Shown piece by piece: positions 8,578 through 64,000 of a DNA stretch of 64,000 nucleotides. Under the pieces are notes generated by a model. That model was not told where the DNA came from and ran no database searches. It was given only the letters and a program-made list of their open reading frames with translations. Source of the stretch: Macrostomum lignano (lineage: Eukaryota); assembly GCA_002269645.1 (NCBI GenBank), contig NIVC01002333.1, positions 21,065 to 85,064 on the forward strand, written 5' to 3'. The first letter of the stretch is position 1, and each line of letters opens with the position of its first letter. A program made the position numbers and the translations under genes.

Positions 8578-23655
<15,078 letters not shown>

Positions 23656-27204: not shown

Positions 27205-28440
27205 CCGTTGAAGTTTCGAGTTTCTGAACTTTCGAGTTCCTGAAGTTTCGAGCTTGTGAAGTGTCTAACTTTTTTCGAGTACGTGAGGTTTCAAGTACGT
27301 AAAGTTTCCAGTTCCTGAAGTTTCGAGTTCCTGAAGTTTCGAGTTCCTGAAGTTTCGAGTTCCTGAAGTTTCGAGTTCCTGAAGTTTGAGTTCCTGAAGT
27401 TTCGAGTTCCTGAAGTTTCGAGTTCCTGAAGTTTCGAGTTCCTGAAGTTTGAGTTCCTGAAGTTTCGAGTTCCTGAAGTTTCGAGTTCCTGAAGCTTCGA
27501 GTTCCTGAAGTTTCGAGCTTGTGAAGTGTCTAACTTTTTTCGAGTACGTGAGGTTTCGAGTACGTAAAGTTTCCAGTTCCTGAAGTTTCGAGTTCCTGAA
27601 GTTTCGAGTTCCTGAAGTTTGAGTTCCTGAAGTTTCGAGTTCCTGAAGTTTCGAGTTCCTGAAGTTTCGAGTTCCTGAAGTTTCGAGTTCCTGAAGTTTC
27701 GAGTTCCTGAAGTTTCGAGTTCCTGAAGTTTCGAGTTCCTGAAGTTTCGAGTTCCTGAAGTTTCGAGTTCCTGAAGTTTCGAGTTCCTGAAGTTTGAGTT
27801 CCTGAAGTTTCGAGTTCCTGAAGTTTCGAGTTCCTGAAGTTTCGAGTTCCTGAAGTTTCGAGTTCCTGAAGTTTCGAGTTCCTGAAGTTTCGAGTTCCTG
27901 AAGTTTCGAGTTCCTGAAGTTTCGAGTTCCTGAAGTTTCGAGTTCCTGAAGTTTGAGTTCCTGAAGTTTCGAGTTCCTGAAGTTTCGAGTTTCTGAAGTT
28001 TCGAGTTCCTGAAGTTTCGAGTTCCTGAAGTTTCGAGTTCCTGAAGTTTCGAGTTCCTGAAGTTTCGAGTTCCTGAAGTTTCGAGTTCCTGAAGTTTCGA
28101 GTTCCTGAAGTTTCGAGTTCCTGAAGTTTCGAGTTCCTGAAGTTTCGAGTTCCTGAAGTTTCGAGTTCCTGAAGTTTCGAGTTCCTGAAGTTTCGAGTTC
28201 CTGAAGTTTCGAGTTCCTGAAGTTTCGAGTTCCTGAAGTTTGAGTTCCTGAAGTTTCGAGTTCCTGAAGTTTCGAGTTCCTGAAGTTTCGAGTTCCTGAA
28301 GTTTCGAGTTCCTGAAGTTTCGAGTTCCTGAAGTTTCGAGTTCCTGAAGTTTCGAGTTCCTGAAGTTTCGAGTTCCTGAAGTTTCGAGTTCCTGAAGTTT
28401 CGAGTTCCTGAAGTTTCGAGTTCCTGAAGTTTCGAGTTCT
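27205..28440. repeat. 16-bp GTTCCTGAAGTTTCGA minisatellite; each unit matches a three-unit heat-shock element
   Basis: About 70 near-identical copies, a few 15-bp variants, and two copies of a ~55-bp interruption. Confidence 0.95.
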
Positions 28441-28604
28441 TAAGAAGCTGTAGTCATTATTCACTGGATATGCGATTATTCTCTCCAGGAAAATGTCTAA
28501 AAAGACGATTTTCCATAATCCACACAGAACATTGATGTTTAATATAGATGAGAAAAACGTCATTGAGCATGAGTTCCTTAGCTCGTAAATTTTTTAACAT
28601 ATAT

Positions 28605-34200: not shown

Positions 34201-36896
34201 AACCAATGGAGGGTTCATCGGAAGTCAGAGTTTAAGGCAATGGCCTTTGACACGAGCGGCGGTAGCCGCGAGTGTCAATTAGGCCATTGCCTTAAACTCT
34301 GACTTCCGATGAGCATCATTGCTTAAAATTTCAAAACTCTTACGTAATCTACGCACTTTATGTACACTATCGTGAATTCTTATCAGTCGATGCTTCTAAG
34401 GGGGTTTGAGATAAGGTTACCTCCACCTCGCCTATGTCTCACCTTTAAGTCGCGCATCTGAAGTCACCCACCCCTTACTCTGCACCCACCCCTAAATTAA
34501 TTACAAATATAAATATTTGCGTGTCTAGAGATCAAATCTCAGATAGAGAAAAGCGGACGGCTGCAGAGATGGAGGCACCGCTCATTAATTGGAAGCATTT
34601 GCCCTGCAGTGAGCTGGGCAACGTGACTAAGGACGAATTGAATTTTGTTTCGGAGGCTTCTTACAATGACAGAAGGGACGACGAGTTCGCTAGATTTCTC
34701 GAATTCATTCAAAAGGAGCCCGAGCCCGATGAGCATCTGCCGCTCCTGCAGGAAGGCAGCGTAGATATCAGCGCCATGGACATCGCCGAGATTGACAGCC
34801 TACCAGCAGACAGCAGGAAGCAGATGATCAGCCATGGACAGCGGTTCAAGACATTCCTCACAGAGGAAAATCTTCAGCGCAATTTACAAACCATTCCGAA
34901 TTCGGTGCTCAACCAATACATTCGCTACTTCTACTTTAAACTGAAGAAGATTGACGGCGAACCCTACTCGCCCGCATCGCTGGTGTGCATCAGGGCTGGA
35001 CTGCAGCGCTATTTGCGAATGATCGAGAAGCTAACCGTTGACATCATCAATGGAGAAGACTTTTCTTCTGCAAATAGCATGCTGCGTGTGAAGGTTCGAG
35101 ACTTTCACCAGAGTGGTGGGAGGACGCAGCAGTTTGAGCCAATCGAGGAGGGGGACATGAGGAAGCTGATGATCTACTTCCAAGGCAGCACAGCTGAAGT
35201 TGAGCAGGACAAATTCTTATTCTACATCATATACAGCTTTGGCGAGCGAGGCCAGGAGCACCTCAAGTTCTTGAAGGATAGAAGCTCACTTCAATTGCAC
35301 GTCGACTCTGATGGAAAGCCGTACTACTGTCTGCCTCCGTTGCCCTCGAAAAATAAGTCAGCAGATCCAGAGAAGGCCAAGAAGCAGCCGGACAACAAGC
35401 AGGCCAGAATTTACGACGTGGAAAAGGTGGAGAAATACCTCAAGCTGCTTCCAGTTACAACGAAGGACAACAATCTGTTTCCTCGTCCTTTGGCCAGCCG
35501 CAACGATGGAGGCCCTGTTTTCTCCTCGAAGCAGAACCGTGGAGAGAATTATCTGAGTGGCTTCATGAGAAACTTGAGTACGAAGGCGGGACTTGCGAAG
35601 ACCTACACGAATCATTGCATTCGGTAAGACTGATAAATTAATAATAGTAACTTTAATTATGTTATGATACATGTTATGTTACCAGTTACTCATGAATCCA
35701 ACTATATAAATTTGCACTCTAAAACAGGGTCACGCGAATATGCGATCTCGAGGCGGCAGGGCACAGCATGAGCGATATAATGAGCATTACTGGACAGCTG
35801 AGCGAGCGAACGACTAGGAGGTACCTAGCCAAGCGTCGCGACCGGTCGCTTCAAAAGACGAGTGAGTCTGTTCAGGTGGCGTTGAATCGTCATGATCTAG
35901 AGCAAGAAGCTGGGCCACCCGAACATGCTGATGCTGTTGAGATTGTCGGTGAGACTGCAGTATCGACGGAGGTTAGTGTTAGCACTGAAGCTGCCTATTC
36001 TGTTGGTACGAAGTTTGCCTTCAACAATTGCACCTTTCACGGATGTTCCTTTAATTAGGCATGCAATCTTTACTTCTACAGGAATCAGCAAATTGTACTC
36101 GTAGAATTACTGAAAGAATAAGAACGACAGTCTAGTTTAATATTTTTTATTTAATGACTTTTAGTACTTTGCTCGACCAGTATGATGTTCATCACCGACA
36201 AAAATTTACATGATATACTGACACCAGCTGTGCTTTTTGTACTGTCGATTTTGCAATTCCTGTGCCAGTTTAATTATTTACATCTTAAAATAAACGTTTT
36301 GAATTGACTGATGCAAAATATGCTTTGCAAGATGCTGGATAAAAACTGGCTTGAATTAATTGGTTGCATTGGAATTGGAATTCTAGGCAATGGCCGGCCA
36401 TTGCCATGGGTCATTGCCATGAGGAGAAATTTTGGGCAATGCGCTATTTTTACCCTATTAAAGTACAATATTTATTCACGTGTCATTTATTTTATTTTAT
36501 TCAAACTGCTTAATTGTATGCTCAATATTGATTTTTATGCTCCTACCCCCAATACCGGCATTTCATCTAATCGTATAGTATCGTATATCGTATAGTACTT
36601 CGAAATAACAATTTTTTATAACAAATATACTGTCGTTTAAAATTAATGGTGGAAGGCCTCTGGGACAAGTTAGAGCTAGGCAAAACAGGGTTTTAAATGT
36701 ACATACCTCATATGTACAACTACTCATCAATTCTATCAGACTAAGAAAAATAATACTTTAAAGACCAACTTGAATTGCATGACACACAGATTTTTTGGCC
36801 TGACGAAGAGCCCAGAGGCTCGAAACCGGTAGCCCATATTAAATAAATTAGTCTTTTGATTTTTTTAAACACGCCGTGACCTCTCTTCTCTCTCTC

Positions 36897-45313: not shown

Positions 45314-48300
45314 TCAGTGCGATTGATGAGCGCTGATTTTTAAGCCCGTGACATCCTTGCCGATCTCCGTGCACTGCAATGGCACAAGAGTACAGGGTGA
45401 CATTTAATAAAGCGCAAGAAATTGTAGGAACATGCCAGAGTGAAATTAGATGCAGAGGGACAAGGTAAAGTGACATGGTGGGGTGATTTTAGCATGGAGT
45501 GACATGGCAGTGACATTGGATCCAGAAAGAGTTGGCGGATTGACACTAGATTATGAGTGACATGTCAGGGTGACACTAGACACGGAGTGACATGTCAGAG
45601 TGACACTAGACACGGAGTGACGTGTCAGAGTGACGCTAGACACGGAGTGACATGTCAGAGCGACGCTAGACACGGAGTGACATGTCAGAGTGACGCTAGA
45701 CACGGAGTGACATGTCAGAGTGACGCTAGACACGGAGTGACATGTCAGAGTGACGCTAGACACGGAGTGACATGTCAGAGTGACGCTAGACACGAAGTGA
45801 CATGTCAGAGTGACGCTAGACACGGTGTGACATGTCAGACCAACATTACATACCTGAGTGACCCGGCAGAGCTGGCCGGCAAACTCGGGAGCATAGCAGG
45901 CCCCGGACAGCGGATCCTTCACAAGCGGCCTGCCCCGATAAATAGGCACGTAGGAGGCGGCGCAGATGTCGAACGGATTGTGCGGATCGTAGTTCAACTG
46001 TCTGGCGTCGGTTGGATTCTTCTCGCAGGTCTGCAAGATTTTCCGAGTCTCGTTGGCCACCTCGGGCTTGGGGCCGAGCTCAAGCAGGCGCCTGGCGAAC
46101 ATGGCGGCGGTAGCGAAGTTGCGCAGCTTGTAGAGAATCTTCAAAGCCGAACGGACAGTTAGCATAGTGTGGGTTGGCTGCAGGTCGCAGTGAGTGAAAT
46201 AGCAGGCCATTTCGGCTGAGCGAATCTCCTCAGTCCGAGGCAGAGCCTTGCGGGCCAGCTCCATCTGCAGGCCTACTATGTAGTTGCGGCACACCTCAAT
46301 GAGCTGCTTGACCTCCGCCACCTCCTGCGAATAGAAATTGAGAAATAGTTCAGCTGATGTGCTCTAGATTACTAGACAATGTCTATAGATTGTCGACTTT
46401 TAGATCATAATTTTAGACGATAAAACGTGAATCTCCAGATAATTATCATTATCGACAGATTAATTGACACAATCTCTATAGATAAGCTTAGTGACTATAG
46501 ATGAATATACAATATCTATAGATACGTTAACAGTATCTATTTTTAGCTCTCGATGAATTTACAAATCTATAGATGAATCTGCAATATCTATAGATAAGTC
46601 AACAATATCCAAAGATGAATCTACAATATCTATAGATGAATCTACAATATCCACAGATGAATCTACAATATCCATAGATGAATCTACAATATCTATAGAT
46701 GAATCTAAAATATCCACAGATGAATCTACAATATCCATAGATGAATCTACAATAGCTATAGATGAATCTACAATATCCACAGATGAATCTAAATTATCTA
46801 CAGATAAGTCGACAATATCTATAGATGAATCTACAGTATTTATAGATAATCTACAATACCTATAGATGAATCTGAAATATCTATAGATGCATCTACAATA
46901 TCTATAGATAAATATATTTCTCCTTCGTAAACTCACCTGGTTGCTAGTGACAACCAGCATCAGTACGCCCAGCAGGCACTGACGGAATCGATCAACAGCA
47001 TCGGCAAAGTTGCCGCGAGTAGTCAAACCGTAGGCAGTCTGCAGCCGGTCCAGCAGCTGACGGAGCCGGATGCCCACCGCTGGCAGTCCGCCGCCGCCTC
47101 CGCGCTGGCCGCCGCTGCCGGCCTCCTTCCAGTTGCGCAGGGGGGCGGCAAAGAGAGGCGGCGAGCCGGCCAGGGTGGGCAGGCAGGCTCGGGACCTGGC
47201 GTAGGCGGCTACGAACAGCGGCTTGAGCGGCTCGAAGCGGGCCACGCCGACCTGAGGAATTGCAAGCGGTTTGAAAGTGTCAGTGGAGTGACAATTAGAG
47301 TGACACAATACGCGGAGTGACAATTAGAGTGACCTAATATGCGGAGTGACAATTAGAGTGACTTAATATGCGGAGTGACAATTAGAGTGACACAATACGC
47401 GGAGTGACAATTAGAGTGACCTAATATGCGGAGTGACAATTAGTGACGTAGGAGACGGAGTGACAATTAGAGTGACCTAATACGCGAAACCACAATCTGG
47501 AGTGACCTAATACGCGGAGTGACAATCAACAGTGACCTAAGCAAGACACCTAAGGTCTGCAAAGCCAAACCTGTTGCGCAAGCAGCCTCATCGCAGACTC
47601 CCAGCTGCCGGCAGCGGCGTGATCGGCAGCCAGCTGGGAGCCGGCAGTCCAGACCTGCCTAGGAGGCGGGCCGCGCACGGGCGGCACGTAGCCGCCACCG
47701 CCAGCCGCAGAGTCGTGACCGCCGGCGTCGGCTGGCAAGTCCAAATCGTCGTCGACCTCCCAGCCGTCGCCCTCCTCATCTTCGACGTCGGAGCCTTCGC
47801 CTTTGGCGCCGCCCTTGGATGCGTTCTCGTCGTCTTCGTCGTCGCCCCAGCCGCTGCCGACTTCGGCTTCTTCAACTTCGACGGCGGCCACAGCGGACGC
47901 CGGCCCGGCTGATGCGACAGCGGCGGCGGCGGCTCCGGCAGTTCCACCGGCGCCCCTGGCTCGCATGGCGGCCTCGAAAAAGTCCTTAGTAACGGTTAGC
48001 AACGGCCAGTTGGAGTCCTGGCTGCGCAGCGGGCAGGGCGGCTGCAGCAGAGAAGCGTTCGGCGGCGGCGTCACCGTCGGCGGGCCAGTCGCCGGATCGT
48101 CGGCGGCGCCCGGTTCGGCCTCCTGCAGGCCGTGCGCGGCGGCGGTGAGGCCAGCCAGGCCGGTCTGGCCGCAGGCGCGCAGAACTCGGACACGCTCGGA
48201 CACGTCGCCAAGCAGCAGAGCCATCTGGAAGTGGCCGCTGGTGTCCTTGCGAATTTCAGCTATGCGCATCATCTTGCGCAGCTTGTCCAACTGGCCGCTG

Positions 48301-51300
48301 ATCAGGTACAGAAAGGCCAGCTTGTCGAAATTCTTAGTGCGCTGGTAGGCCATCTCCACCATCTGGTGGTTGCCATGGGCCAGGGCCAGCTCGCCCAGCC
48401 GTTCCCAGCACTGCTTGTCGTCAAGGGCCCGGGCGCTCTCCAGGGCGGCGTCAAGGTTGCCGCATTCGACGGCCAGGCCGAATCTGGTGCGCTCGTCTTT
48501 GACAAAGTGCAGCGCCACCTCCGGGTAGCCTTTGCGCTGCAGGTAGGCGATGAGAGCCTGACCAACTAGCTTAGCGTGGCGCACCATGTGCAGCACCTCT
48601 TCGTATTTGCGATTCACCAGGGCCATCTTGAATCGGTACTCGGTGGGGTCGATGCCCAGCACGCGGGGCACGCATTCGCGGTCCAGACAGTAGACAGAGG
48701 TGCCTAGTTTGAGGGTATGAGGAGCACGATATAATCATCTCTTCGGGTGTACCGATATGTATCGAAAAATGACACCTATATGTATCGAAAAATGACACCG
48801 ATATGTATCGAAAAATGACACCGATATGTATCGAAAAATGACACCGATATGTATCGAAAAATGACACCGATATGTATAGAAAAACGCTAAATAATAAGTA
48901 TAAAACTGATATATATTGATAATATGATGATTCGATCATTTACTACCGATATGTATCGAAAAACTCGATATGGTAAAGATGACACCGATATGTATCGAAA
49001 AACTCTATATGGTAAAGATGACACCGATATGTATTGAAACACTTTTGCCAGTTTAAAAGCTCACCTTTAACCCGAGTAAGGTAGATTGGCACGTCCAGGG
49101 TTCTAATAATGCCATTATCGCCGGAGGTCAGCAGGTACTTAATATGATTGGCTGTGGTGTACAGCAGCACACCGGAGTCGTCCCAGGCGGCGCTCTTAAT
49201 CCGGACGCTCTCCTGCACTGTGCACAGGGTGGCCAATTTCCTATCGCACAGGGTCACGGTCAGCTTTGAGATTAGGGCCACGTTGGACATGTCGGCAGAC
49301 CAGATCGCCTGGCGCACCTGTTTTGTTGCGGACGGAGAGGACGAGGGGTAATTTTAAATTATTAGGGACCAGGGATATTAATATTAGGGATCAGGAACTG
49401 CTCAGGATATTAGGGATCAGGGATTAGGGATATTAGTGATCAGGGATTAGGGATATTAGTGATCAGGAACTGCTCAGGATATTAGGGATCAGGAATTTGG
49501 GATTTGGGATATTAGGGATTAGGAACTGCTCAGGATATTAGGGATCAGGAATTTGGGATTAGGGATATTAGTGATCAGGAACTGCTCAGGATATTAGGGA
49601 TCAGGAATTTGGGATTTGGGATATTAGGGATCAGGAACTGCTCAGGATATTAGGGATCAGGAATTTGGGATTTGGGATATTAGGGATCAGGAACTGCTCA
49701 GGATATTAGGGATCAGGAATTTGGGATTTGGGATATTAGGGATCAGGAACTGCTCAGGATATTAGGGATCAGGAATTTGGGATTTCGGATATTAGGGATC
49801 AGGAACTGCTCAGGATATTAGGGATCAGGAATTTGGGATTTCGGATATTAGGGATCAGGAACTGCTCAGTATATTAGGGATCAGGAATTTGGGATTTGGG
49901 ATATTAGGGATCAGGAACTGCTCAGGATATTAGGGATCAGGAATTTGGGATTTTGGGATATTAGGGTCAGGGATCGGGAACTGCTCAGGATAATAGGGAT
50001 CAGGAATTAGGGATTTTAGGATATTAGGGATCAGGAACTGCTTAGGATATTAGGCATCAGGAACTGTTCAAGATGTTAGGGATCAGGAGCTGCTCAGGAT
50101 ATTGGGATATTTGTTTTCGGATACGTACTGTACCCAATCGAAACCTAGATGAGTATTAATGAAAGGTTGAAATCCGGGAAACAATCAACAAATATTTAAT
50201 CTTACCTGAGCAGCTTTCACAGAGCTCAGAGCTCGTTTCTGCTGCACATCGTACAGCGACACGGTGTCGGGCTCCTTCACCAGCAGGCAGCCAGTACCGG
50301 CGTAGAAAATCTCCTCAGCGTTGGCCAGCTGAAACTTCTTAGACACCTCGTTGCGCATATTCTTAACGGCCAGCGTGTGGCCTTTGTCAAGCACGGCGAA
50401 CCGGTTGCGGGCCACCCAGATTGCGGTCAGGCCCGAAGATCGCTTCGAGTCGGCGGCATCGATAGCCGAATCGGTGGCGTCTCTTGGCAAGCAGTGCAGC
50501 TCGTAGGTGGAATTTTCCGGATTAGCGCTCCGGCAGCCCAGCAGTACGGCATTCTCGGCTGGGTTGTAAGTCAGACTGGTGTAGTTGGCCTTCTTTGGCA
50601 GCTGCAGTACCGGCTGGTCTTTGTTTGTGTTCAGGTCTAGCCGGCGAAGCGTCTTCTGCTTCACGTATAGCAGGCAGTTCTCGTGGATCTGATTAGAAGG
50701 CGGTGTTTGGGATTTCTGCTTTTGCTGCCTGCTAAGGATCGAGGGACTGAGGGATCGAGGATCGAGGATCGAGGATCGAGGGACTGAGACTGAGGGATTT
50801 GGGATCGAGACTGAGGGATATGGGATCTAAGCCTAAGTACGGAATAGGATCTAAGCTACGGGAATGGGATTTCAGCTACCGGAATAGGATCTACAGCAGC
50901 ACTAACCGAGTAGGCGGGCCGCTCCCGCTCCAGCTTGAAGATGACCATGCCATTGTCGTGCCCAGCAGCGAACAGGTTCAATGACGGATGCGCTGTTAGA
51001 ATCCAGAATCGGTCATTGTCCCTACGAAACGTTTGCACGCAGGTCCGCTTGGCCATGTCCCACACTCGAATGCTCTTGTCTTCGCTATTGCTGAGCATGA
51101 GCTCTTGACGGGGATGGAAGATGGCGCAGGACACGTTGTTATAGTGGCCTCGGCAGGTGTCCAACTCCCAGGCTTTGCTGTCATTCATTCGCCACAGTTT
51201 CACTTGACGGTCGTCGGCGGCGCTAACAATGACGGGCATAGTTGGGTGGAACATCACCCAGTTGACGCCGCGATCGTGGCCTTCTAGCACGTGCTTCACA

Positions 51301-54047
51301 ATGGCATCGGTGGTGCCGAACAAGTCGGTATGACCGGGACCCTGGGCAAATGGTTCACAATAAACAGTGCTGTTTAATCATATTTTTCAGGCAAAATTGG
51401 CCTCAACAACTATAAGCTCAACTAACCTGCATGCCGCCGCCGCCTCTGTAACCTCCGATATCGTCGTGACCGCCAAGTCCCGGAGCCACGTTCTTCTTGC
51501 GCAGGCCGCTAATATCCCAGACTCGAATGGTCTGGTCTAGGCTAGCGCTGACAACCAGATCTTCGCTCGGGTGGAACTGGGCGCACATAACGTAGTGACT
51601 GTGGCCAGTTAGCACGCAGATAGCAGTGCGAGCCTGCCAATTCCACACTCTGATTGTCTGGTCATCGCTAGCGGACAGAATCCACGGATACTCGTGATGG
51701 AAGAATGTAGTTCGGATGTAGTCCAAATGGCCTAGCAGGGTGAACAGGCACTTGCGCTGCTTGTAATTCCACACCTTGATTTTGTAATCGTCTCCGCCGG
51801 ACACAAACAATGGCTGGTTGCCATGGAAATGGATGCCTCGAACTGGGCCCTCGTGTTCATCGAACTTCTCAATAAGAGTGCGCATTCGATAGTCCCAGAG
51901 CTGGATGACGCCATTGTGCAGAGAGCACAGGATCCATGGCCGCTTGGGATGGAAGGAGAGGCCTGCATCCGTGAGTTAATGTGAGTGGCTTGGGCTTAGG
52001 AAAAATTTGCTTTATAAGCTTTCTGGACAGGCTAATTTTAGCCAAAATTTATGTGCAATATATTAATAAATACTGGCCAAATAGTGGTAGATGGTATTTA
52101 AACCATAAATATGGTAAAAGACAAAAGTTAATTAAAAACATATGCCTAACCACTTTTTAATACACAAAATGCAATTAAATGATTAAACATACTAGCCTAT
52201 AATTTGATACATTTATCAAATTAACATTGAAAAATAACACTGTAGTAATACAATAAATATGAAAAGCTTAGCCTACTGTATGAAAAAGAGTTTTTTCATT
52301 GGCTGAAATTAGAGCTGTAGCTATAAATAATATCTTAAAGTTTATAAAAACCATCTCAATATTTCTTACTACTTTAGGCAAGCATTTTTATCTTATATTT
52401 GTTAAAATAATAAAGACTGCCTTCATTTTTACATAGAAAATTAGTATAATTTTGCAAATAAATGACTAAAAAGCAAATATGCAAAAAAGAAAGACTTTTT
52501 TACAATGAAAAATACTTGTTATAAATATAACTCAAAATTGAATGAAGTTCATAATTTGAACAAAGGTCATTAAAAATGCAGTGCTATTATAGTAAACTTC
52601 TATTTCAATTTTTAATTAGCATATTAAATTTCAAATATTAAAAACTTGCTTAAATTTTTAGTTTTTTTAGATTTGCTTTTTTCTTAATCAAAAACAAAAT
52701 AGGCTATAAAAATTATATTAGATACAATAGAAAAAAATTACATATTTGTGGAAAGGGTATTATTCTATCTTTTGAAACTAATCTAATTGCTACAACCAAG
52801 TTGTAGAAAGTTTCCATTTCTAATGTGACATTTTGATGTATTTTTAACATTGTACTTTGTGCTAGTAGTACTGCTTATATATCATCTTAAGCAGGTAATA
52901 TATATGTACTCTTGGCCTGAGCAATCTATAACACTAAACTTCTATCTGTATTAATTCTCTCTTTTAGGGGCTTTTCTTAGTCCAGGCATTACTAGGATCA
53001 AAGGGTCACAACTTACACTTTGGTAGATATTTTGCTTTGAGGTAAGTTCTTAGATCCTAGGTCTAAATATTCCTAACCATTTAGTAGATGTTCTACCCTG
53101 AAGTGATTTTTTAGATTCTAAATCTAGAAGTCTAGTTCTAATCTTGTTCTAAGAATTGAATGAGTTCTTTCAATGCTTAGGGTCTTTGGTATCCTTAAAT
53201 GACTAAGACAGAAATATTGCTCAATTTATTTTCATTGTAGAAGCCTAAAAAGAAGCACACAGGTTTAGTTTTCCCTGTTGGCAACTTATATACTTGTATT
53301 TATAGGTTTTTCTTGGTGCTGTTTAAAACAAAAGAGTTGTCACAATCATAATATTCAAAATATTTACAATATTTTTAATATTATATACATTAAAACAAAA
53401 TTGCACATTTAGGATATGAAAGAATAAAGCTATTATACATTGGTCTATATCATGAAAATAGCAAAAAAGTCTAGTTTCTTTATTTACTTCAAAGGTTAAA
53501 TCTATTCATTTTTATTAATTTTAAATTTTAATGACCTAACATAAGTATATCTATATCAACATTGGCTACAATATAGAGATAAACAAAAGAATCAATTATG
53601 TTAGTCATTTTCAATAGATAAAAACACTTAGGGTTAGATACTAAATGTTTTTGAGAAAAGCTATATACAATTCAATCCAACAATCCAATTAATTATAAAT
53701 ATTTCATAGCTAGGTCATAGCTGAGAGGAAGGCCATGGCCACCTTAGCAATTGACAATGATTCTTCTATTGCTTTGTTTGCCACCTTTCTGTCTAGTAAT
53801 AATTGTAGAGAGCCATTTTTCCACTAAGTTAGTCATTTTGTCTGGAACAAAATTATTAGGCCTACAAGATACATATTAGGTTATAGCACTTCTGTCTAAA
53901 AATTTGACTAATAGGCACAATCAGAAAAAAATCTATTGAATATGCAAAAGTTTTAATTAAAAATACATTGTAAAATAAATTGTTTAAAATTCCGCAATTG
54001 TACTTACCCTTCACTCGTGCAGATTTCGACTCAAATTTGGATAGCAT
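45314..54047 (-). CDS. COPA: Coatomer subunit alpha (alpha-COP), 1241 aa
   Basis: Exons 54047-54008, 51962-51427, 51341-50907, 50688-50206, 49317-49065, 48703-47571, 47251-46937, 46324-45854, 45373-45314; total 3726 nt, in frame, all [27 protein letters not shown] start, WD40 repeats ([20 protein letters not shown]), [35 protein letters not shown], and [12 protein letters not shown] end. Confidence 0.97.
45455..45838. repeat. 30-bp GAGTGACATGTCAGAGTGACGCTAGACACG minisatellite, COPA intron 8
   Basis: About 10 copies. Confidence 0.92.
46480..46910. repeat. 21-bp ATCTATAGATGAATCTACAAT minisatellite, COPA intron 7
   Basis: Seen directly. Confidence 0.9.
47283..47540. repeat. 29-bp GGAGTGACAATTAGAGTGACCTAATATGC minisatellite, COPA intron 6
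   Basis: About 8 copies. Confidence 0.88.
48750..49035. repeat. 23-bp CCGATATGTATCGAAAAATGACA minisatellite, COPA intron 5
   Basis: Seen directly. Confidence 0.85.
49360..50105. repeat. GGATATTAGGGATCAGGAA(CTGCTCA/TTTGGGATTTG) minisatellite, COPA intron 4
   Basis: Seen directly. Confidence 0.92.
50735..50895. repeat. GGATCGA / GGGATCTA short-period repeat, COPA intron 3
   Basis: Seen directly. Confidence 0.75.
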
Positions 54048-55386
54048 TTCTGACTTCTTGGTCAGAATTTAGGATAATTAGAGAGAGAACGTACAGATTT
54101 GATACTGAAACTGATATCTGACTACTCTTCTTATCAAACCTCCAGATGCACAGAAAGGCAACTTGTAATGAGGTCAATATACAAGAGAAACAAATGCTGA
54201 GGAGAGAACATAAGCAAAATCGTGTGATGTGTCAGCAAACAAAAATGTACAATTCTCTAGTTAATATTAGTTTTTAATTCCAAGGCTAAAAATGTATTTT
54301 TAAAAAATGTCTTCTTGTTTGAATAAAATTTAAGCTTTACCTCAAAAACTACACAAATAATATCAGTCTTGTTTTTATGTTACAAAAACCGTTAATTTAT
54401 TTTTTGGAATAAACACGTATCTTGCACTTTAACCACCAAGCCTTTAACCACAATTGCGTAATTTGATTCATTTGATTTAAATTAAGTCTCAAAGTTTTTA
54501 ACGCTTGTGTTCATAGTCCAGTTTTAAACTGACTGCAGAGTATCCGAAAAAGATCACGTTCGTATCGAGTGTGTAGAATTGTAACATGCAAGTCACTACT
54601 AATGAACATGCACTTTAATTCTGTTGCTAATCCTGCATATTTGTTTCTTATGCACTTTTCCAATTTGCAATTGATGACACTCCTAGAGCGCCTGATTGAC
54701 GTAGCCTAACCGGAGGTCAGTCCATTATTTTAATTCGTGTTTACTACATTTACATCCTCTGCCCAGCATTACAACTTATTAAAGACACTTTAAGTCAGCC
54801 TTGATCGTGTCGCCCGGCCGCAACTACTTCAGGATATATGCGCTTATGCTTCTGTCTCTTCTCGGATTTTGAATAGGTCAAAAACTACTTGCAGGCATTT
54901 GTGGTCCACATTTTTTTAGCAAAAGGGATTTAATTATAGTGTAGAGCGAGGTCGATCGGGGCGTAACGGTTTGGAGTGCTTGGGGAAGATTTACGACAGC
55001 TACAGACATGCAAATGTATGGTGTACAAATCTGGACTTCTGAAGCTAAAATCCATGGTCACCTTGAATTAAAACGCTATACACTTGCAGTTGATTTTTCT
55101 AGAAATGAGCTGGGAAGGTCGGTTACACATGTACATGTATATACATGTATTTATCATATCGCTGGTGCATTGAGCATGCTTTCGAGAAATGGGATTTATC
55201 TAGCGCGGATTTTTATCGACAGAATTTGTCTATGGCAAAACCCCATTCAGCGCTATGCGTTCTCTAGAGCTTTGCGTCCTGCGCCTAACGGACGGTGTTC
55301 TGCACTTTTTCAATTTCTACCACATGCTTGTTGTGCTTTATACTGCGTCTCATATCTTAGCCTAGTATTTGTACGTGTTGTTCTTG

Positions 55387-55740
55387 CTAGTAGCTCTGGC
55401 TCAAGCCTGTTTGCTCGGAGCTGATTGGCTCTGCCAGGCTTTTATCACCATTGCTTTCGCCCTCTCGCCTCAAAACTTTTGTGAAGCTGGCTACCTAGTA
55501 AATGTCATTTTGATATTGATAAATAAATCAATAAACCGAGAAGACATACAAAGCTTCGTAACCGGCTCGCTTGTACATGAATGCAATACAATATAGAATT
55601 ATTATGCAAACATGAGCATATACCTCCTTGTCCTTTTCATCTCTATGGTACGAGATCAGTTGCTTTAGAATTCTCTCTATCGTTGGCAAATGAACAATTT
55701 CTTCACGCCCAAGCAAAAAACCATAACTTGGCTTAAGCTC
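55387..55740 (-). CDS. Candidate last two exons of an unidentified minus-strand gene
   Basis: Open frame ..LLGREEIVHLPTIERILKQLISYHRDEKDKE ends at a GTATAT donor (55624|55623); a 129-nt AT-rich intron and TTTACTAG acceptor lead in phase 0 to VASFTKVLRREGESNGDKSLAEPISSEQTGLSQSY* (55494-55387). 5' boundary unresolved. Confidence 0.35.
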
Positions 55741-55774
55741 TCATGCATGCATAAGAGGAATAAATAAGTAAAAA

Positions 55775-57088
55775 ATGTCCGGTAAAAAGTACACGGTCTT
55801 CTGCACCCCTGCCTTCGGTTTGTTCGGCAGCATAATCGACCTTGGCGTCGACCTGGCCCCAGCTCGCGATCGGATTCAAGCTTGCAAGCTGCGCTACCAC
55901 AAGGAATTGTGGAACATCATCTGCGATCAGGGTATTCAGGGTAGCGATAGTGGCGGCGGTGGTGGAGGCGATGGCGGCGGCGGCGGCGGCAGTGGCGGTG
56001 GCAACGGCGGCGGCGTCCGTGGCGGTGGCGGCAGCAGTGGCGGTGGTAACGGCGGCGGCGGCGGTGGTGGTATTGGCGGCGGCGGTGGCAGCGGCGAGGA
56101 GCAGCCAGCTGAGGAAGGCGACGATGAAAACCAGAGCAACGCCAGAAGCAGAAGATTTGGTACTTCAGCATCGAACTCTGGTGCAGTTTGCAAAGGCGGC
56201 AGCAACGCCAGATGGCGCAATCGCAAAAGCCAAGGAGTCCAACAGTGCAGCAGCCCAGTCCTGGCCTATTCGCAGACTTCGTCACCAAACTCAGCAACTC
56301 TAGCTGAGACGCTTCTGACTCAACAGGCGCAGATGATGATGCAACAAGGTGCAACGAGTTTGCGGAACCGGGGGCCAAACCAACGGTCGCAACAGCAGTC
56401 CGGTTACCAACCCCAGGCTGCAGGTCAGCAGCAGCAGTTTATTCCGCAAAAAATCCCCCCGCCAGGTCCTCCAAACGCAATGCAAGCGCAACAGCTGCTG
56501 TATCCTGAAGCTCAGGTGCAGCCTCCTCTGCACCGTCTGCCCCATTCCAAGCATCCACGACCGGCTAAATCGCGACACAAGCCACAACAGTTGCATCAGC
56601 AATTTGAGCCGCAGTCTTATGCAGAGAAGCAGAAACCTCACATTCAACGGCAATACTATCCACCGGTCAATATCCAAAGTAATTTTCTTCTTCAACAACA
56701 ACAGCGAGATTTCCTATCTCAGCAGAAGTCGTATCTAGAGCCCAGGTCCGCCTATCCAATGCAGCGGTATTGTGCAGAAAACCCGTTCGAAGCAGGTACG
56801 CAGCAGTCGCATCCAGTCAATCCACGGCTGGCGTACCTGAGCCGGCGAATGTCTCACCTGCATGACTACAACTTGTCCAGCACATCCAGCAGCAGCAGCA
56901 GCAGCTGCTCCTCTCCGCACAGCACAACAGCTGTCGACGAATCACTGAAGAGCGAAGCAGGAAGTGCGCCGGCGCGGCGCCACATAGGTAGTCACTCTTT
57001 TGTTCCAATGAAGTGCGGCGACTGGAACAAATCTGCCACGTGCATAGCCAAGAAGAAGCGGCACAAGAACTCCGATACGGAACGGTAA
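55775..57088 (+). CDS. Intronless 437-aa protein of unknown function (paralog A): novel N-terminal domain, poly-Gly, Q/P-rich region, C-terminal FxPxxCGxW motif
   Basis: Uninterrupted ATG-to-stop ORF. Residues 7-54 are 28/48 identical, ungapped, to residues 17-64 of the ORF at 58357. Confidence 0.75.
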   Translation: MSGKKYTVFCTPAFGLFGSIIDLGVDLAPARDRIQACKLRYHKELWNIICDQGIQGSDSGGGGGGDGGGGGGSGGGNGGGVRGGGGSSGGGNGGGGGGGIGGGGGSGEEQPAEEGDDENQSNARSRRFGTSASNSGAVCKGGSNARWRNRKSQGVQQCSSPVLAYSQTSSPNSATLAETLLTQQAQMMMQQGATSLRNRGPNQRSQQQSGYQPQAAGQQQQFIPQKIPPPGPPNAMQAQQLLYPEAQVQPPLHRLPHSKHPRPAKSRHKPQQLHQQFEPQSYAEKQKPHIQRQYYPPVNIQSNFLLQQQQRDFLSQQKSYLEPRSAYPMQRYCAENPFEAGTQQSHPVNPRLAYLSRRMSHLHDYNLSSTSSSSSSSCSSPHSTTAVDESLKSEAGSAPARRHIGSHSFVPMKCGDWNKSATCIAKKKRHKNSDTER

Positions 57089-57522
57089 CGAACTCGTCAG
57101 TAAGCTACTCAACACTGTCCAGGCTAACTACATACAAATATTTCATGGCTAATTTTTTGAACAACGCAACAATTCGAGTTTGTGTCGGTTTTAAATATCC
57201 TCCTACGCAACTAAACGTATGTTAATAATTTTTTATTTTTAAAGCCCCTCCGTATGCTGTCTAATTAAATGCCTGTACAATAGAAGTGTAATAACCTTCC
57301 TCGGTACCAATCGAATGAGAAAGGTTGACCCGTATTCTGCAGCCTATACTCAAGTACAAGGCATGAATAATTGTCAATGCAGTCCACTTCTTTACGTTTA
57401 TACAATTGGCATTAACGAATTATTAGAATGAGCAAGAACAATATGATTCATTGAGAAGAGTAGAACTGGGCCAAAGGTTGTACAGTACGCTCGTATTCGT
57501 CATTTTTTGCAATTGACGGATT

Positions 57523-58090
57523 TTACTTTGCATTCGCAACTGAAACTTGAAAAAGCACACGCGTGTACATATGGTCCCATACTATTTTCAGTCCGACAGC
57601 CAAGCAGCCCTTCAGGCTCTCTGCCATAGTACTACCAGCTCCAAATCTGTCCTGGACTGCAACGCCCAGCTCAATGGGCTCGCGCTGGGCAATGAGGTGC
57701 AGCTCAAATAGATCCCGGACCTGCTCCGCCAGCGCGCTTCTCAGGCCGGGCCCAGAGGCCCCATCCCCATCTCGGTGATCAAATCCCAATTGCAGACAAT
57801 CCCTCGCTGCCGTCCCCTGTCGCCTTTGGCTCAACCCGCAGGGATCTTAGAGCAGTCAGCATGGCGCGTGGCCCTCCCGGCCATGGCTGCTTTGCTTGCC
57901 ACCGTTTCCTTTAGGACCAGGTACCTGAGGAGCGGTGCCCCTTTTTGTCGCGCAGGCAGTGAAAACCATGAGCACTTTATCTGCCCCTGCCCAGTCTTCA
58001 GGCTCACTCACCTCGGGCCAAAACCGGTTCTCCCCGACGTTTGCAAGCCCGAGAGCATACCGCTGCTTGCCCGGCCCTTATAGGTGGACC
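57523..58090 (-). CDS. GC-rich coding-like island, possible exon(s) of an unidentified gene
   Basis: Open frame 57845-57523 (LRSALAEQVRDLFELHLIAQREPIEL..LKIVWDHMYTRVLF); possible upstream exon 58090-58012 with TGTAG acceptor and GTGAGT donor. No family recognised. Confidence 0.25.
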
Positions 58091-58356
58091 CTACAGTATA
58101 ATTAGCGGCACATGATTCCCCGTTCAAAGTTTTGTTTTTGTACTCGTCGGACGCGTTTCCACCGAGCCACTGTATCCTGCTTCCGATTTGAGTATAAGCT
58201 ATTTTTAACCCAAGATATTACTACTAATGTCCCCATAGTTTGGCTGTCTATGGCAGTTTAAAATGCACATCGAATGCAAAATCCTTCAAGAGGTTTTATT
58301 TAAAATCTTTTGATATTAAGGAGCATCCATGATTTTTAATTGAACAAGGACTCAAA

Positions 58357-59745
58357 ATGAACCGATTTACGCAGAGAAGTCTAAGGATGCCTGACGAAAA
58401 CGACACGACTTTCTGCGCGCCCACACCGGCCGTGCTCGGTTCAGTCATAGACCTTGGCATCGACCTGGAGCCATTGCGATCCCAAATCAACGAATGCAAG
58501 CTGCAATACCGCAGAGAGCTGTGGAAAATCATCTGCGATCGGGGCATCGGAGCAGTTCACGAAGCCGACCCGGGTGGCGAGGGCTACATCGAGGTCTATG
58601 GTGGTGACGATGGTGGCGAGGAAGAACCTGTTGAGAGTGGCGAAGATACTCCTCTTGTCAATGACATCGATGGAGGCGACGGCGGTGGCGTTGATGGCGG
58701 CCGCAGTGGCGAAAGTATCAAAATGACTAACATTGATGGTGGAGGTGGCGAAGGTGGCGAAGGCGGCGAAGGCGGCGGTGGTGGTGAAAGTTTCCGAATG
58801 AGCACCATCAGTAAGATTGAGCGCAAGCTCAAGGCCGACACCGATGGGCAGCTGTTTGATTGGGGCTTTGAAGGCATATTTAATGATAACATTGATGAAC
58901 TAAACCAAAGCAACGCATGGGGAATTAGCGACAACGAAGATTCGAGTTCGTGCGAGGCAAGCGACAACGATTTCTGCGTCAGCCGTCGAGTTCTGGACAG
59001 CGCGACCTACGTTATCCCGCGGCGCTCATCGGAGCCAACAAATTCATCAGTTCCAACGGAGCAAAATCGAAATGAAGCGTTGCTTATTAGAGATAAACGG
59101 AAGAAGTATCTGGAAAAACTGCAGCGGCTGGAGCTAAATCAGAAAGTTCTGCAACAACTTCAACAAAACCAATCAAGGAAGAAAAGTCGGCAACAAAAGC
59201 AGATCCAGTTTGTTAAAAATAACCTGAATTTGCAGTACGAACAAGAGAGCAAGTTGCACCTGAAGATTTTGCAGCATCAAAAGCAGATCCAGCTGCTTCA
59301 GAAAAATATGCAACAGCTTCAGCAGAGCCAGTTACAACAGAGGAATCTGCAGCAAAAGCAACAGAGTCAGCTTGAAAAGCATTTGAAACAATTGCAGCAG
59401 AGCCAGTTGCATCAAAATAATCTGCAGCAAAAAAAGGAAATCAAGTTGCTTCAGAAGAACCTGCAACGACTCCAACAGAGCCAGCTTCATCAAAGGAATC
59501 TGGAGCAAAGACAGCAGATTGAGCTGCTTCAGAAGTATTTGCAACAACAAAGGCAAATCCAACTGCTTCAGGAGAATCTGCAGCAGCAACAGCAGGGTCG
59601 AATGATTCAGAAATATGTGTATGCTCAACCCCAGCAAAATGAACTGCTTCAGCCAAATCTCACACTTCAGAACAGCAATCTTCAGCCACTTCTGCAAGTT
59701 CAAACACATCAGGCCAATCTACAAAGACTCTATCAAGGTCACTAA
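58357..59745 (+). CDS. Intronless protein of unknown function (paralog B), open 462-aa portion; Gly/acidic then Q-rich
   Basis: ATG-initiated ORF sharing the N-terminal domain with 55775-57088. Coding-like sequence continues past the stop in shifted frames. Confidence 0.72.
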   Translation: MNRFTQRSLRMPDENDTTFCAPTPAVLGSVIDLGIDLEPLRSQINECKLQYRRELWKIICDRGIGAVHEADPGGEGYIEVYGGDDGGEEEPVESGEDTPLVNDIDGGDGGGVDGGRSGESIKMTNIDGGGGEGGEGGEGGGGGESFRMSTISKIERKLKADTDGQLFDWGFEGIFNDNIDELNQSNAWGISDNEDSSSCEASDNDFCVSRRVLDSATYVIPRRSSEPTNSSVPTEQNRNEALLIRDKRKKYLEKLQRLELNQKVLQQLQQNQSRKKSRQQKQIQFVKNNLNLQYEQESKLHLKILQHQKQIQLLQKNMQQLQQSQLQQRNLQQKQQSQLEKHLKQLQQSQLHQNNLQQKKEIKLLQKNLQRLQQSQLHQRNLEQRQQIELLQKYLQQQRQIQLLQENLQQQQQGRMIQKYVYAQPQQNELLQPNLTLQNSNLQPLLQVQTHQANLQRLYQGH

Positions 59746-60641
59746 ATAACCAAATTCTGCAACAGCCCGAGAAGAGTCAGGTCTATCAGGAAAGCTTGCA
59801 ACCCGAACAGAGTCATACATGTGTGCTTCAGCAAAACCTGCAACACCCTAAACAAAGTCAAATTCTTCAACAAACTTTCAACAGACGCAGAAAAGTCCTA
59901 TGTTTCAACAGAACGTACACCCAACTCAGCAGAATCTGGTTCTTCAACAGAACGGATATCCAACTCAACGAGTCCAGTGCTTCAACAGAACGGATATCCA
60001 ACTCAACAGAGTCCAGTGCTTCAACAGAACGAATATCCAACTCAACGGAGTCCAGTGCTTCAACAGAACGGATATCCAACTCAACAGAGTCCAGTGCTTC
60101 AACAGAACGAATATCCAACTCAACAGAGTCCAGTGCTGCAACAGAACGAATATCCAACTCAACAGAGTCCAGTGCTTCAACAGAACGAATATCCAACTCA
60201 ACGGAGTCCATTTCTTGAGCAGAATATGCATCAGACTCAGCAAAGTCAGCTACTTCAGGTGACTCTGCAAAATACCAACAATGGTGAAATTGCGCGGCAA
60301 AGTTTGCAAGAACCCGAGAAGATTATCGAATTAAACCATCCGAATTCCCACTGCAGCAGCAAGCTGTCGAAATGCAGTGCAATTCGAGCATAGTGCGGCC
60401 AGGCAAAGAACAGAGCCAGCATCGGCCACAGCATTCCACAAATTCAGATCGTCGAATTCACAAGAAAAAACTGTTCAGCGACGACTACAACGGCCAACGG
60501 AAAGCCCAGATGCCGTGCTGGCAGAAGACGTCGTCGCCAGTCGATTTGACAGCTTCCACCGGCAGGAACCGTTTCACTCCTCTCTACTGCGGCGGCTGGA
60601 CGTCCACTAGCTGTAGCGCCGCCAAGACAACAGCAAAGTAA
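59740..60641 (+). pseudogene. Frameshifted continuation of paralog B (assembly errors or pseudogenisation); repaired length about 760 aa
   Basis: Q-rich reading moves frame 1>3>2>1>3 (near 59742, 59875, 59968, 60340), each consistent with a 1-bp deletion, and ends in RFTPLYCGGW..C, matching SFVPMKCGDW..C at the end of paralog A. Confidence 0.6.
59940..60210 (+). repeat. 39-bp coding tandem repeat (LQQNGYPTQQSPV) x7 in paralog B
   Basis: Unit CTTCAACAGAACG(G/A)ATATCCAACTCAAC(A/G)GAGTCCAGTG; the first copy is 38 bp. Confidence 0.9.
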
Positions 60642-61150
60642 GCGCACAGAGCAGGAAAAGCTGCTGTGATTGCAATCGCAAAGTTCCAGCCGATCATTCT
60701 AGCAGTTATTGCATTTCAAATGAAATGTGTTTACAGCGTATTATTACTGTATTCTAGAAATTTGGCTATCGAGAAATAGTCAAAGTCATTTTGGATGTAT
60801 TACTTATCTACGACTAAATACGCATAATACTATAAAACCACGGTGTACATTAGGTATATTCGGCAGACGTGTTACATGTACATGTATACCATAGCCTGTG
60901 CATTAATCGACGACATTTTTTCTTAATGTTGTGCTCTGCTTGTATAGTATATTTCATATTAATTTTCACGGTTCTTCATCTTGCGATACACAGTATTGCA
61001 TATGCAATTACAATATATTATCGTAACACACAACCCCCCTTTGTATGCATCATACTTCTTATGCATACGCGAATTTTAAGTGTGACTCTAGAGCAATTCT
61101 TCAATTACGAGTACTTGTTTGGAAACATATTTGAGCACCCCTGGCGTAAG

Positions 61151-61510
61151 GGGGGGCGTAGCTCAGCGGTAGCGCAGCTGCTCTGGTGTGCCAGCGACCC
61201 AGGCTCGATTCCAAGTGCAGTCACATTAATTTGGGGCTGAATTGGAATCTCGGCTTGGCTCTGCTCGTGCAATTAACGGCCTTGAGAGCCAACCCCCAAG
61301 GCGCAGTGAAGTGTACATGCCTAACGATAATATAAAATTAGGGCCGCTGTACACTCCTGTGTGAGTGTGTGCCTGCGTACGTATCCGCGCGCTTGTATGC
61401 CTGCTCAGGGGAGTCGGCGGAATGGGCAGTAATGCCTCTCGCCGGTTGTGTGCCTATGTCGCTTAAAGTGCGCCAGGGTGCACACAACCCCCCCTGCCTC
61501 TAAAAAAAAA
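61151..61510 (+). mobile_element. tRNA-derived SINE, full length, with target-site duplication
   Basis: Pol III A box TAGCTCAGCGG (61159-61169), B box GGCTCGATTCC (61202-61212), A9 tail (61502-61510), flanking direct repeat ACCCCTGGCGTAAG at 61137-61150 and 61510-61523. Confidence 0.85.
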
Positions 61511-64000
61511 CCCCTGGCGTAAGTGTACAAATGAAGCACGGCATGTGGACTGCACCAGAAAGACTCAAGGACGAGAGGGAAATTTCCGAAATTATTAAAA
61601 TATACATGTAAAGCTATCTATGTAAGTGGAACTTAATTCATCACCCGATTAGCCTGATCTGAAACTCTCACTTCGACGCTTGAGAATCCACGATCAGCAG
61701 ACAAAGAAACAAAAAGAGACAAAGAATTTCCGGAAACACCGCAATACCCTTATAATAACACGTCTTTGGCTATCTGCATGTACATTTACAACTAGGTCGT
61801 GTGACGGGACTGTTTCCCCTGTCTTTAATAATCCTTAACTGCTGATACTAGAATTAAGAGCTAATTAAGAGCAGCTGCCTTTAATTTAATCTCTTTGATG
61901 CCACCAAAGTTGTTTAAGGGGAAAGTTCTACCCTCTAAATTAATAGTCTCACTATACTGTCACTAAGTTGTCGTAGGGTTAATTCTATACTTTCTTAGAA
62001 TCGGTCTGTGAATTATTCTTAGTATATATATGAGTAATTGTCTGAGTATCTGTCTGAGTATTGAGCTGAGATATATATTTGCGTATTCCTTTCTTCTTAC
62101 TGCGTAGCGTCTTCTCTCTGTACTGGTAGCGTTCTTACTTAGTTCTGGTAGCGTATTGCCTGAGCGGTATGTACATGTACATGTCTCTACTGGTATATGT
62201 ACTGCATGTATGATCTTTCCAGTTCTGGGCGCTCCCGAGATTAGATCAGGGTCACGGCCTCCGGTATTCTATAAGTCTGCTTTGAGATCTACTTCGTCTT
62301 TTAATTAATCAGTAGTATTTACAGGATACTTCACTCTCGGAAAATTATACTGTCGGAATCACTTCTTAATTATTTACTCGGAATTCGTAATAGATTTTCT
62401 CAACTAGCTAGTAAAGGCTGAAGGCTGTTTCGAAGCTCGAAACTAGTCGAGTTATCTTCTCCTCGCCCAAAATCGCGTCTATTTACTAAAATTTCAGTGC
62501 AGTTTGTTCAAAACAAAAATTAAATTGCAAAAATATTTTGAGAAATACGAGTACTTAAACAAAAAGTTTTTCTTTCAAATGCGCAGATTTAAAATGGCAT
62601 AGACAGTTAGATTTTCGAGTAAAAAAGAATAAAAAGAGGCATTACACAGTCGTAAATGTACATGAAGTAAAGTATTCGCGTACCCGTGCCTACGTCGCGA
62701 AATGAGATATCGTCGCTCTTGATTGATACATGAATACAATTGCATTTAACATTTTGGATACATTGGATATATTTTGGAATACATTTTGGAAGGATCAAAA
62801 ATGTAACCGTAGTAAAATTGAAAATATTGCCGATTCGAAATCGGCTCGGGAAATTTATATACTACTGAGCTCGAGCTAATTGGCTAATAGAATGCATGTA
62901 TTACAGTATTAATATATATATACATGTACTAGTACATCTAAGCTATAATGCTCTCAAGCAATAAAAAACGCGACGTTTGGAAAAAGCAATTAGGCTGCAG
63001 CGAGACCTCGATTGTATTGCATTATATTTCTTATTGTGAGGCATTTAAAATAAGGATAAAAGAAGAAAAAAAGAACTGCGCAAAAACACACTGCCTGCCA
63101 AGTGCCCAGCAGCGCGGTTGCAAGAATAAAATGCCCCCGCCGGCGGAGGGGTGGGTGTTCACCAAACCTACCCGAGCTGCCGTACACACGCGGCGGGGGC
63201 GTACAGAATGAGCGTGCTTGGTCACTATAAAAAGCCGGTTTGCTCAAGGCAAGCATAGCGCAAACCGCAGCTTTATATAGTAGAATATGTACCGTTTTTC
63301 TGAAAAGCTCATAGAAGAGATGACGATCTAGAACCACATGATCCAAGTTAAGATTTTTTATTTTACAGCCTATAATTTTCTGGGACTATGCACCCTATCC
63401 CACATTGAGAGGAAAAATGACAAGAATATGTTTGTAATATAAAGACGTGACCTACAATTCGTATTTGTACCAAATATCAAAAATAGCTGTGGTGAGTTTT
63501 AATTTAAAACATTTTCATAAGTTTTCGTACGTTTCTCCATTTTGAGGAGCCGGAAACGCATCATTTTCAAATTTATCTGATTCTTGACCCTAAATGAAAA
63601 CATAAGACGTTAACCTTTTTGCTTTTGAAAAAGATTCGAATAATCTTCTTTCACGAAGTGAAAATTGCGCACGGTTTTAAAGTCGGTTCTTTCAAAGAAA
63701 GTTAGATAAGAATTTTGGCAAAAAAGAAAACAAATGTAAAAAATTGCCTTATGCTCGTAGGGCGTAGGGCGTATACGCACTACATTCAAGTGTAGAAACA
63801 TGTTTTCTCACCTTTATTTCAATTTATAACTTGTGAGTTGAGCTGGGAGTTTTGAGATTGCATACTAGTGTACCTCATATTTTTTACGCTTATACCATAC
63901 CCATAGAAGAAGCAGATTAATCTAAAATGTGTATACTGTATATTAATATTTCAACAGTGATGTGATAAGATAAGAAATCGATTTTTTTCTAAAAGATATT

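Follow-up and report, generated by a model that had tools for sequence, protein, structure and literature searches.

Mastermind-like coactivators are proteins in which a short N-terminal helix constitutes the only ordered element, followed by a long stretch of Gly/Gln-rich disorder. The Cip/Kip inhibitors of cyclin-dependent kinases (CDK) carry a CDI domain composed of a cyclin-binding LFG, a linker helix, and a CDK-binding W..F.F and Y/F-x-W segment. In this work, we analyzed a tandem pair of genes (hereafter copy 1 and copy 2) from the flatworm Macrostomum lignano, located at positions 55775-60641 of a 64,000-nucleotide stretch of contig NIVC01002333.1 (assembly GCA_002269645.1, corresponding to Mlig_3_7), the whole stretch being referred to as the window. 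Their family resembles the Mastermind-like coactivators in architecture and nuclear-type composition, by analogy only; it differs from them in displaying no sequence or profile similarity, a much shorter helix and an extra C-terminal peptide motif, and membership is unsupported. Affiliation to the Cip/Kip inhibitors was discarded, since no Pfam CDI match was obtained and an LFG preceding the conserved N-terminal block (N-block) occurs only in copy 1 and the Mlig025130 branch. Three short resemblances, namely IDLG to the CNC/Nrf2-type DLG, the LFG plus helix plus Trp arrangement to CDK inhibitors, and an LxCxE-like L-R-C-G-D, were rejected, having no profile support and being conserved in part of the family only.

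The closest sequences are M. lignano hypothetical proteins PAA74659.1 and PAA53295.1 (Mlig025130), PAA82631.1 (Mlig012493), PAA61241.1 (Mlig005397) and PAA89508.1 (Mlig024224), which share with the window pair the same conserved islands, a low-complexity middle, the C-terminal motif (C motif) and single exons; they differ in having 21-39% identity to copy 1 overall outside the islands, lengths from 345 to 813 residues, and no name or described function. The Mlig028124 group (PAA93024.1, PAA81051.1 and PAA92992.1) resembles the pair in the N-block core only (VDMGIDV...INECKRRYHREVWKILCD), and differs in having three exons (L007 6001-9125), no C motif and an unlike remainder. A flatworm-specific M. 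lignano gene described elsewhere likewise lacks homologues beyond flatworms and comes from the same genome annotation, with no relation implied, and the identifiers of our family are absent from the supplementary lists of neoblast and germline genes of that study (PMC5816591).

Considering all the evidence, the best explanation as a whole, to which we assign a probability of roughly 0.6, is that the pair belongs to a Macrostomum-only family of old tandem paralogues whose products would be disordered adaptors. Concerning its parts, the window pair very probably represents a real, selected and taxon-restricted host gene family; more tentatively, the architecture of the products would fit intrinsically disordered, probably nuclear, adaptor-type proteins with a short binding module at each end, which we regard as a possible function and not the likeliest outcome. 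The features of the pair are as follows.

55775-57088, plus strand: copy 1, intact single-exon gene of 437 codons, as one ATG-to-stop open reading frame (ORF) with a GenBank gene call
55835-55936, plus strand: N-block core of copy 1, I21-I54 (IDLGVDL plus helix), present in all family members
56120-56140, plus strand: acidic and N-Q-S-N island of copy 1, D116-N122, from an 8-sequence alignment
56999-57085, plus strand: C motif of copy 1, FVPMKCGDW (56999-57025), from a pattern search, plus basic tail with 8 Lys/Arg in the last 30 residues
58357-60641, plus strand: copy 2, frame-broken in the window contig by comparison with an 813-codon ORF at a second locus; its Met at 58387 corresponds to Met1 of copy 1 in the alignment
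58447-58548, plus strand: N-block core of copy 2, with 65% identity to the copy 1 core over 34 residues (tblastn E ~1e-13)
58894-58914, plus strand: acidic and N-Q-S-N island of copy 2, DELNQSN, aligned to the copy 1 island
59290-59548, plus strand: internal 78/39-nt tandem array of copy 2, Leu/Gln-rich repeats (Tandem Repeats Finder and repeat search)
59904-60224, plus strand: internal 39-nt tandem array of copy 2, 8.3 units with 92% matches, 13-residue Q/P-rich repeats (Tandem Repeats Finder and repeat search)
60573-60599, plus strand: C motif of copy 2, FTPLYCGGW, in frame with the N-block at the second locus

An earlier note on this DNA had described ungapped N-terminal blocks of 48 residues sharing 28 identical positions, including three Cys and one Trp, and the translations proved to be as written (55793-55936 and 58405-58548; BLASTP E=1e-21). 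When each block was compared by tblastn to the six frames of the window, only the other block was retrieved (E ~1e-19), with no third copy. Over about 34 residues the N-block follows the pattern hD(L/F/M)G(I/V/L)D(L/V)...I..CK.(R/Q)(Y/F)..E(V/L)W..hC, which both window genes carry, and its predicted helix bears the invariant I, C-K, E, W and C. Two of the three Cys are invariant across six diverse members, the third being variable. At the other end, the shared C motif was found where the note had placed it, as FVPMKCGDW (56999-57025) and FTPLYCGGW (60573-60599): the pattern F[VT]P[LM]..G.W has exactly two matches in the six-frame translation of the window, both at the expected 3' ends, and none in 100 shuffles, with BLAST alone giving marginal values (E 0.002-0.03). 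In five paralogues, F-(V/T)-P-(L/M)-x-x-G-x-W lies 21-49 residues from the C-terminus, and in three of the five members examined it is followed by a Lys/Arg-rich tail (8-11 Lys/Arg in the last 30 residues of those three). The Gly-rich and then Gln-rich middles have diverged beyond alignment, much as the note had stated, except for an acidic and N-Q-S-N island between both parts that it had overlooked; in the 8-sequence alignment, N122 of copy 1 is invariant. G, S, Q, P and A prevail among the residues, and isoelectric points are 7.7-9.6.

A second locus on contig NIVC01000150.1 keeps the gene order COPA (coatomer alpha), copy 1 and copy 2, and the two loci display 98.7% identity in both genes and identical N-blocks. 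Copy 1 is a single exon with an uninterrupted frame, and its homologue at the second locus has 434 codons with the same 98.7% identity. The deposited copy 1 call (L001 7419-8732) spans the exact 1314-nt ORF, yet lists a product of 431 residues and not 437; this model probably drops 18 nt of GGC repeat. In the window, the frame opened at 58357 ends about three fifths through copy 2, with three stops in the starting frame, and the rest of the Gln-rich repeats lies in other frames together with the C motif, so that the latter is out of frame with the N-block. In contrast, copy 2 of the second locus is a single uninterrupted 813-codon ORF that takes in the N-block, both repeat arrays and the C motif. 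Compared to it, window copy 2 is shorter at four places, each of which breaks the frame (three by 1 nt and one by 157 nt); the single-base differences fall in runs of only 2, 1 and 4 identical bases, therefore a homopolymer artefact is not obvious. Mlig_3_7 was obtained from PacBio reads with Canu assembly and Pilon polishing, and duplicated blocks of ≥95% identity make up 180 Mb of it, which its authors tie to the extra large chromosomes present in the DV1 line (PMC5730564). Given an assembly so rich in such blocks, the frame breaks may stem either from genuine pseudogenisation of one of the duplicates or from misassembly. The claim of two intronless ORFs was retained for copy 1, and the absence of introns for copy 2 by the design of its second-locus counterpart; the window version of copy 2 is interrupted and does not form one ORF. 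Furthermore, the 39-nt array has four units fewer in the window (59904-60224) than at the second locus (L002 10001-12442). The second-locus product of copy 2 is PAA89508.1 (Mlig024224g1), from the same 90% cluster as the window product, and the truncated product of window copy 2 is deposited as P0002. The deposited PAA89508.1 model (735 residues) removes 78 repeat residues as an intron, though the ORF is continuous over 813 codons.

To place the pair among known proteins, a profile of the two N-blocks was scored exhaustively against 1.84 billion representative proteins, which yielded 11 proteins at E≤1e-3, with the paralogues at E values from 6e-32 to 2e-4. The true relatives were the window product, four M. 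lignano hypothetical-protein groups (Mlig025130/012493, Mlig005397, Mlig028124 and Mlig024224) and one Logan protein (P0008), and five other matches (P0004 and P0009-P0012) were discarded on inspection as repeat-protein false positives. Word-indexed protein searches with full-length copy 1 and with 2-sequence and 6-sequence blocks gave one low-complexity match or none, missing the known paralogues; this type of search is unsuited to a 34-residue block, and the exhaustive profile search alone worked. No Pfam-A family was matched at E≤1 by copy 1 or by the N- and C-terminal ORFs of copy 2, and the repeat-region ORF of copy 2, as well as six paralogues searched at E≤10, gave sub-threshold matches only (8.9-14.2 bits versus cut-offs of 20.9-34). 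The PDB sequences contained no match to the N-block profiles, and the IMG/VR and Joint Genome Institute (JGI) metagenome searches returned no relative. The description of an unrecognised family was accordingly borne out in that no Pfam, PDB or IMG/VR search linked it to a known domain or transposon ORF, and has to be amended in that its products are already deposited as M. lignano hypothetical proteins.

Mlig025130/Mlig012493 (328-350 residues), Mlig005397 (427 residues) and P0008 (450 residues) display the whole architecture: the N-block comes first, then a Gly/acidic stretch and an acidic island of N-Q-S-N type, and a middle that is either Gln-rich or basic leads to the C motif. This agrees with the previously noticed arrangement of conserved ends flanking a low-complexity linker. 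Genes having all of these parts comprise one exon of 345 to 813 codons, as seen in Mlig025130 and Mlig005397. P0008 shares 40% identity with Mlig005397 and has a much higher GC content; it is encoded on 1.6-kb Logan contigs from SRR30276804 and SRR30276812 (L003 and L004) whose ends nearly coincide and which carry an AATAAA close to the 3' end, and probably represents a transcript of another species. At the Mlig025130 locus, a second, unannotated paralogue lies 2 kb downstream, split into two ORFs and harboring an (A/S/T)GGK repeat array (L005 10026-11383, plus strand). With 85% identity between its N-blocks, this tandem pair is young compared to the old one in the window (65%, synonymous divergence, dS, of 0.94), and being independent it indicates that tandem pairs arose more than once. 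Two deposited products of Mlig028124 differ in their C-terminus by frame. One entry of this group bears the UniRef title 'Zf-CpG_bind_C domain-containing protein'; current Pfam detects no such domain there at E≤10, nor any other, and the PDB gave no match.

These gene structures bear on the origin of the family. Intronless members may be old retrocopies of a spliced N-block parent similar to Mlig028124, later amplified in tandem, a scenario that concerns origin only, is compatible with the disordered-adaptor family proposed here, and which we hold to be somewhat unlikely, though the best of the alternatives. On average, M. lignano genes contain about five introns (PMC5730564). Mlig028124 does possess the N-block over three exons without a C motif, and copy 1, the second-locus copy 2, Mlig025130 and Mlig005397 are all single exons; however, neither window gene is surrounded by a poly(A) remnant or flanking direct repeats, and the N-block alone is shared with the putative parent, in which the C motif and the N-Q-S-N island are absent or weak, so that Mlig028124 cannot be the direct source of the intronless members.

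Selection was assessed by Nei-Gojobori estimates on the 34-codon N-block in ten pairs. The ratio of non-synonymous to synonymous divergence (dN/dS) was 0.20-0.43 in all ten, hence not near 1, with dS of 0.8-2.0. Between copy 1 and copy 2, dS was ~0.94 and dN/dS 0.26, which upholds the view of an old duplicate pair under selection, and the copy 1 core gave 0.23-0.38 against the paralogues. In the first part of copy 2, the window and the second locus differ by 7 synonymous and 6 non-synonymous changes (dN/dS 0.22). As judged from these codon comparisons, the N-block is under purifying selection. Regarding expression, the GenBank annotation of NIVC01002333.1 calls genes at the positions of both copies; such calls were derived from RNA-sequencing transcriptional units (StringTie plus a de novo transcriptome, expression-filtered) with ORFs by TransDecoder (PMC5730564), and therefore constitute indirect evidence of transcription for copies 1 and 2.

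The pair could also consist of neutral by-products of low-complexity DNA or of decaying pseudogenes whose conserved ends merely reflect recent duplication. The broken frame of window copy 2, the split second paralogue at the Mlig025130 locus and the unstable tandem repeats that make up the middles point in this direction. Nevertheless, the paralogues are old (dS ~1) and their N-blocks retained dN/dS values of 0.2-0.43 while the middles diverged beyond alignment, at least four distinct intact genes exist, and the 40%-identical relative P0008 occurs in transcript-like contigs from two independent runs; hence we consider this explanation improbable.

Structural predictions with AlphaFold2 were carried out for two members, copy 1 and Mlig005397, using the 8-sequence family alignment as input. 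Mean predicted local distance difference test (pLDDT) values were 49 and 47, with a predicted template modelling score of 0.21. The sole element confident in both models is one N-block helix of ~26-28 residues (residues 28-55 of copy 1, pLDDT 82-85; residues 95-120 of Mlig005397; pLDDT 77-89 overall); two Gln-rich helices appear in copy 1 as well, and no confident structure was obtained for the C motif (pLDDT ~41-48). At this length and with so little structure, the conserved parts do not qualify as folded domains. A signal peptide could be dismissed on inspection of the sequences, as the hydrophobic stretch ahead of the N-block is missing in three branches and is preceded by ~87 residues in two.

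According to the earlier note, the ends were two small folded or metal-binding modules; in such metal-binding or jointly folded modules, the conserved Cys would ligate zinc. The two invariant N-block Cys in six diverse members and the presence of Cys in most C motifs would suit this arrangement. Conversely, the C motif Cys is replaced by Val in the second paralogue of the Mlig025130 locus (FVPLWVGDW) and displaced by one position in P0008, which together with only two invariant N-block Cys argues against a metal site; no conserved His or fourth ligand is present, leaving fewer than four invariant Cys/His, and AlphaFold2 gives a lone helix with no domain of N-C contacts. The claim is not supported, and metal-binding or jointly folded ends appear very improbable.

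A transposon- or virus-derived origin, also suggested by that note as retro/viral derivation, was weighed against the genomic context. The absence of introns and an integrase-core ORF ~1.1 kb from the Mlig025130 pair would be in line with it. No reverse transcriptase, integrase, transposase, Gag/capsid or envelope domain was detected by Pfam on the window genes or their paralogues, however, and no terminal or inverted repeats flank the pair, the region 52000-64000 showing internal coding repeats only; there is no IMG/VR relative, the same COPA-adjacent context is found at both loci, and the integrase fragment lies outside the Mlig025130 genes and is absent from the window locus. The lack of hallmark domains, of flanking repeats and of IMG/VR or metagenome relatives, along with the conserved host context, points to a host family and not to a mobile or viral unit, making such a derivation highly improbable. 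The integrase-core ORF itself (rve, E 5e-15; L005 12489-13010, minus strand), located past the Mlig025130 tandem pair on the opposite strand, is presumably a retroelement fragment.

Equally far-fetched is a strong divergence of these proteins from known cofactors whose only ordered part is an N-terminal helix followed by Gly/Gln-rich disorder (e.g., Mastermind-like), for which the overall architecture alone speaks (short N-terminal helix, Gly/Gln-rich remainder, basic stretches), given that no MamL-1 or other Pfam match (E≤1 for window ORFs; E≤10 for paralogues, sub-threshold matches aside) and no PDB match was obtained and the helix spans only ~26-28 residues. The C motif is not known to have a counterpart.

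In the proposed family of disordered adaptors, the N-block helix would form one short binding module, contacting a partner or associating with itself, and the C-terminal peptide may serve as a second one, in the manner of a short linear motif. The low-complexity linker between them would supply length and multivalency, and perhaps coiled-coil or condensate behaviour; it is prone to repeats and differs in length even between the near-identical loci, as in the four 39-nt units mentioned above. The condensate scaffold or transcriptional cofactor put forward in the earlier note may likewise fit these data. Several observations weigh against this proposal. The hydrophobic moment of the N-block helix is not above that of shuffled versions, so that an amphipathic helix is unsupported and a docking face is not evident from the sequence; the C motif, as said, is not confidently structured, and copy 2 and P0008 have only a weak basic tail. 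Copy 1 and its second-locus twin differ by 5 synonymous and 12 non-synonymous changes (dN/dS 0.72), although these 17 differences are too few to interpret. No copy-specific expression data or family gene identifiers were found in the M. lignano literature text and supplements searched, and the SRA run identifiers did not occur in the text either. Moreover, very distant relatives in other animals could escape a profile of 34 residues, which bears on the Macrostomum-only distribution.

A bolder version, which we consider unlikely, would take the family as a macrostomid invention, namely two-ended nuclear adaptors with a repeat-driven, rapidly resizing Gln-rich linker, which would have grown out of a spliced N-block gene through retrocopying and successive tandem duplications, or otherwise would take the N-block as a conserved metazoan cofactor helix diverged past recognition; in the latter case, a missing pathway component would be assigned in flatworms. 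The family is undescribed so far, although of a familiar kind, that of taxon-restricted low-complexity proteins with short conserved motifs, and it bears on no long-standing open question. Since orphan low-complexity families are common in the M. lignano genome, its value is mainly for annotation: if the proposal is true, hypothetical proteins of a model of regeneration and reproduction become a defined family with three short selectable islands for expression and localisation work. It also provides a compact example of short modules that persist while a repeat-driven disordered linker changes length between near-identical duplicated loci.

The neighbour on the contig is a 1241-residue WD40 protein, identified by its Pfam matches as COPA, and the pair lies downstream of and divergent from that gene. 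Two further features complete this part of the window.

45551-51885, minus strand: COPA, multi-exon, with Pfam WD40, COPA beta-propeller, TPR and COPI_C matches in order
57089-58356, no strand assigned: spacer between copies, with 99.6% identity to the second locus, small indels aside

Four spliced host genes had been listed for the window in the earlier note, of which only COPA could be verified. In the last COPA ORF (45551-46321, minus strand), the COPI_C match stops at about residue 166 and the frame remains open for ~90 codons further, through a 30-nt tandem array (45555-45839), either because the repeats encode a C-terminal extension or because a splice or stop went unrecognised. The otherwise AT-rich spacer contains a GC-rich block of ~540 bp (57540-58080) with ~100-codon ORFs on both strands; no further copy of this block was found in the DNA examined and its ORFs had no Pfam match, its counterpart at the second locus being 94% identical, with indels.

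Farther upstream, most of positions 4000-44000 of the window is densely filled by dozens of different arrays of micro- and minisatellites with periods of 4 to 64 nt, each up to 2.2 kb and with strong strand composition skew. Pfam matches on long ORFs at 4-44 kb (Phage_int_SAM_3 at 27265-28563, MSG, Keratin_B2_2, GLTT and others) coincide with these tandem-repeat arrays and were dismissed as artefacts, and an Rfam scan of the whole window gave no match. A 368-codon ORF at 34521-35627 (plus strand) displays a sub-threshold QRICH1-domain match (E 8e-5; 23 bits versus a cut-off of 30.8). Outside the arrays, Sel1-repeat matches were found on the ORFs 12883-13461 and 20967-21647 (plus strand; E 2e-9 and 4e-16), which are probably exons of a Sel1-repeat host gene with satellite-filled introns.

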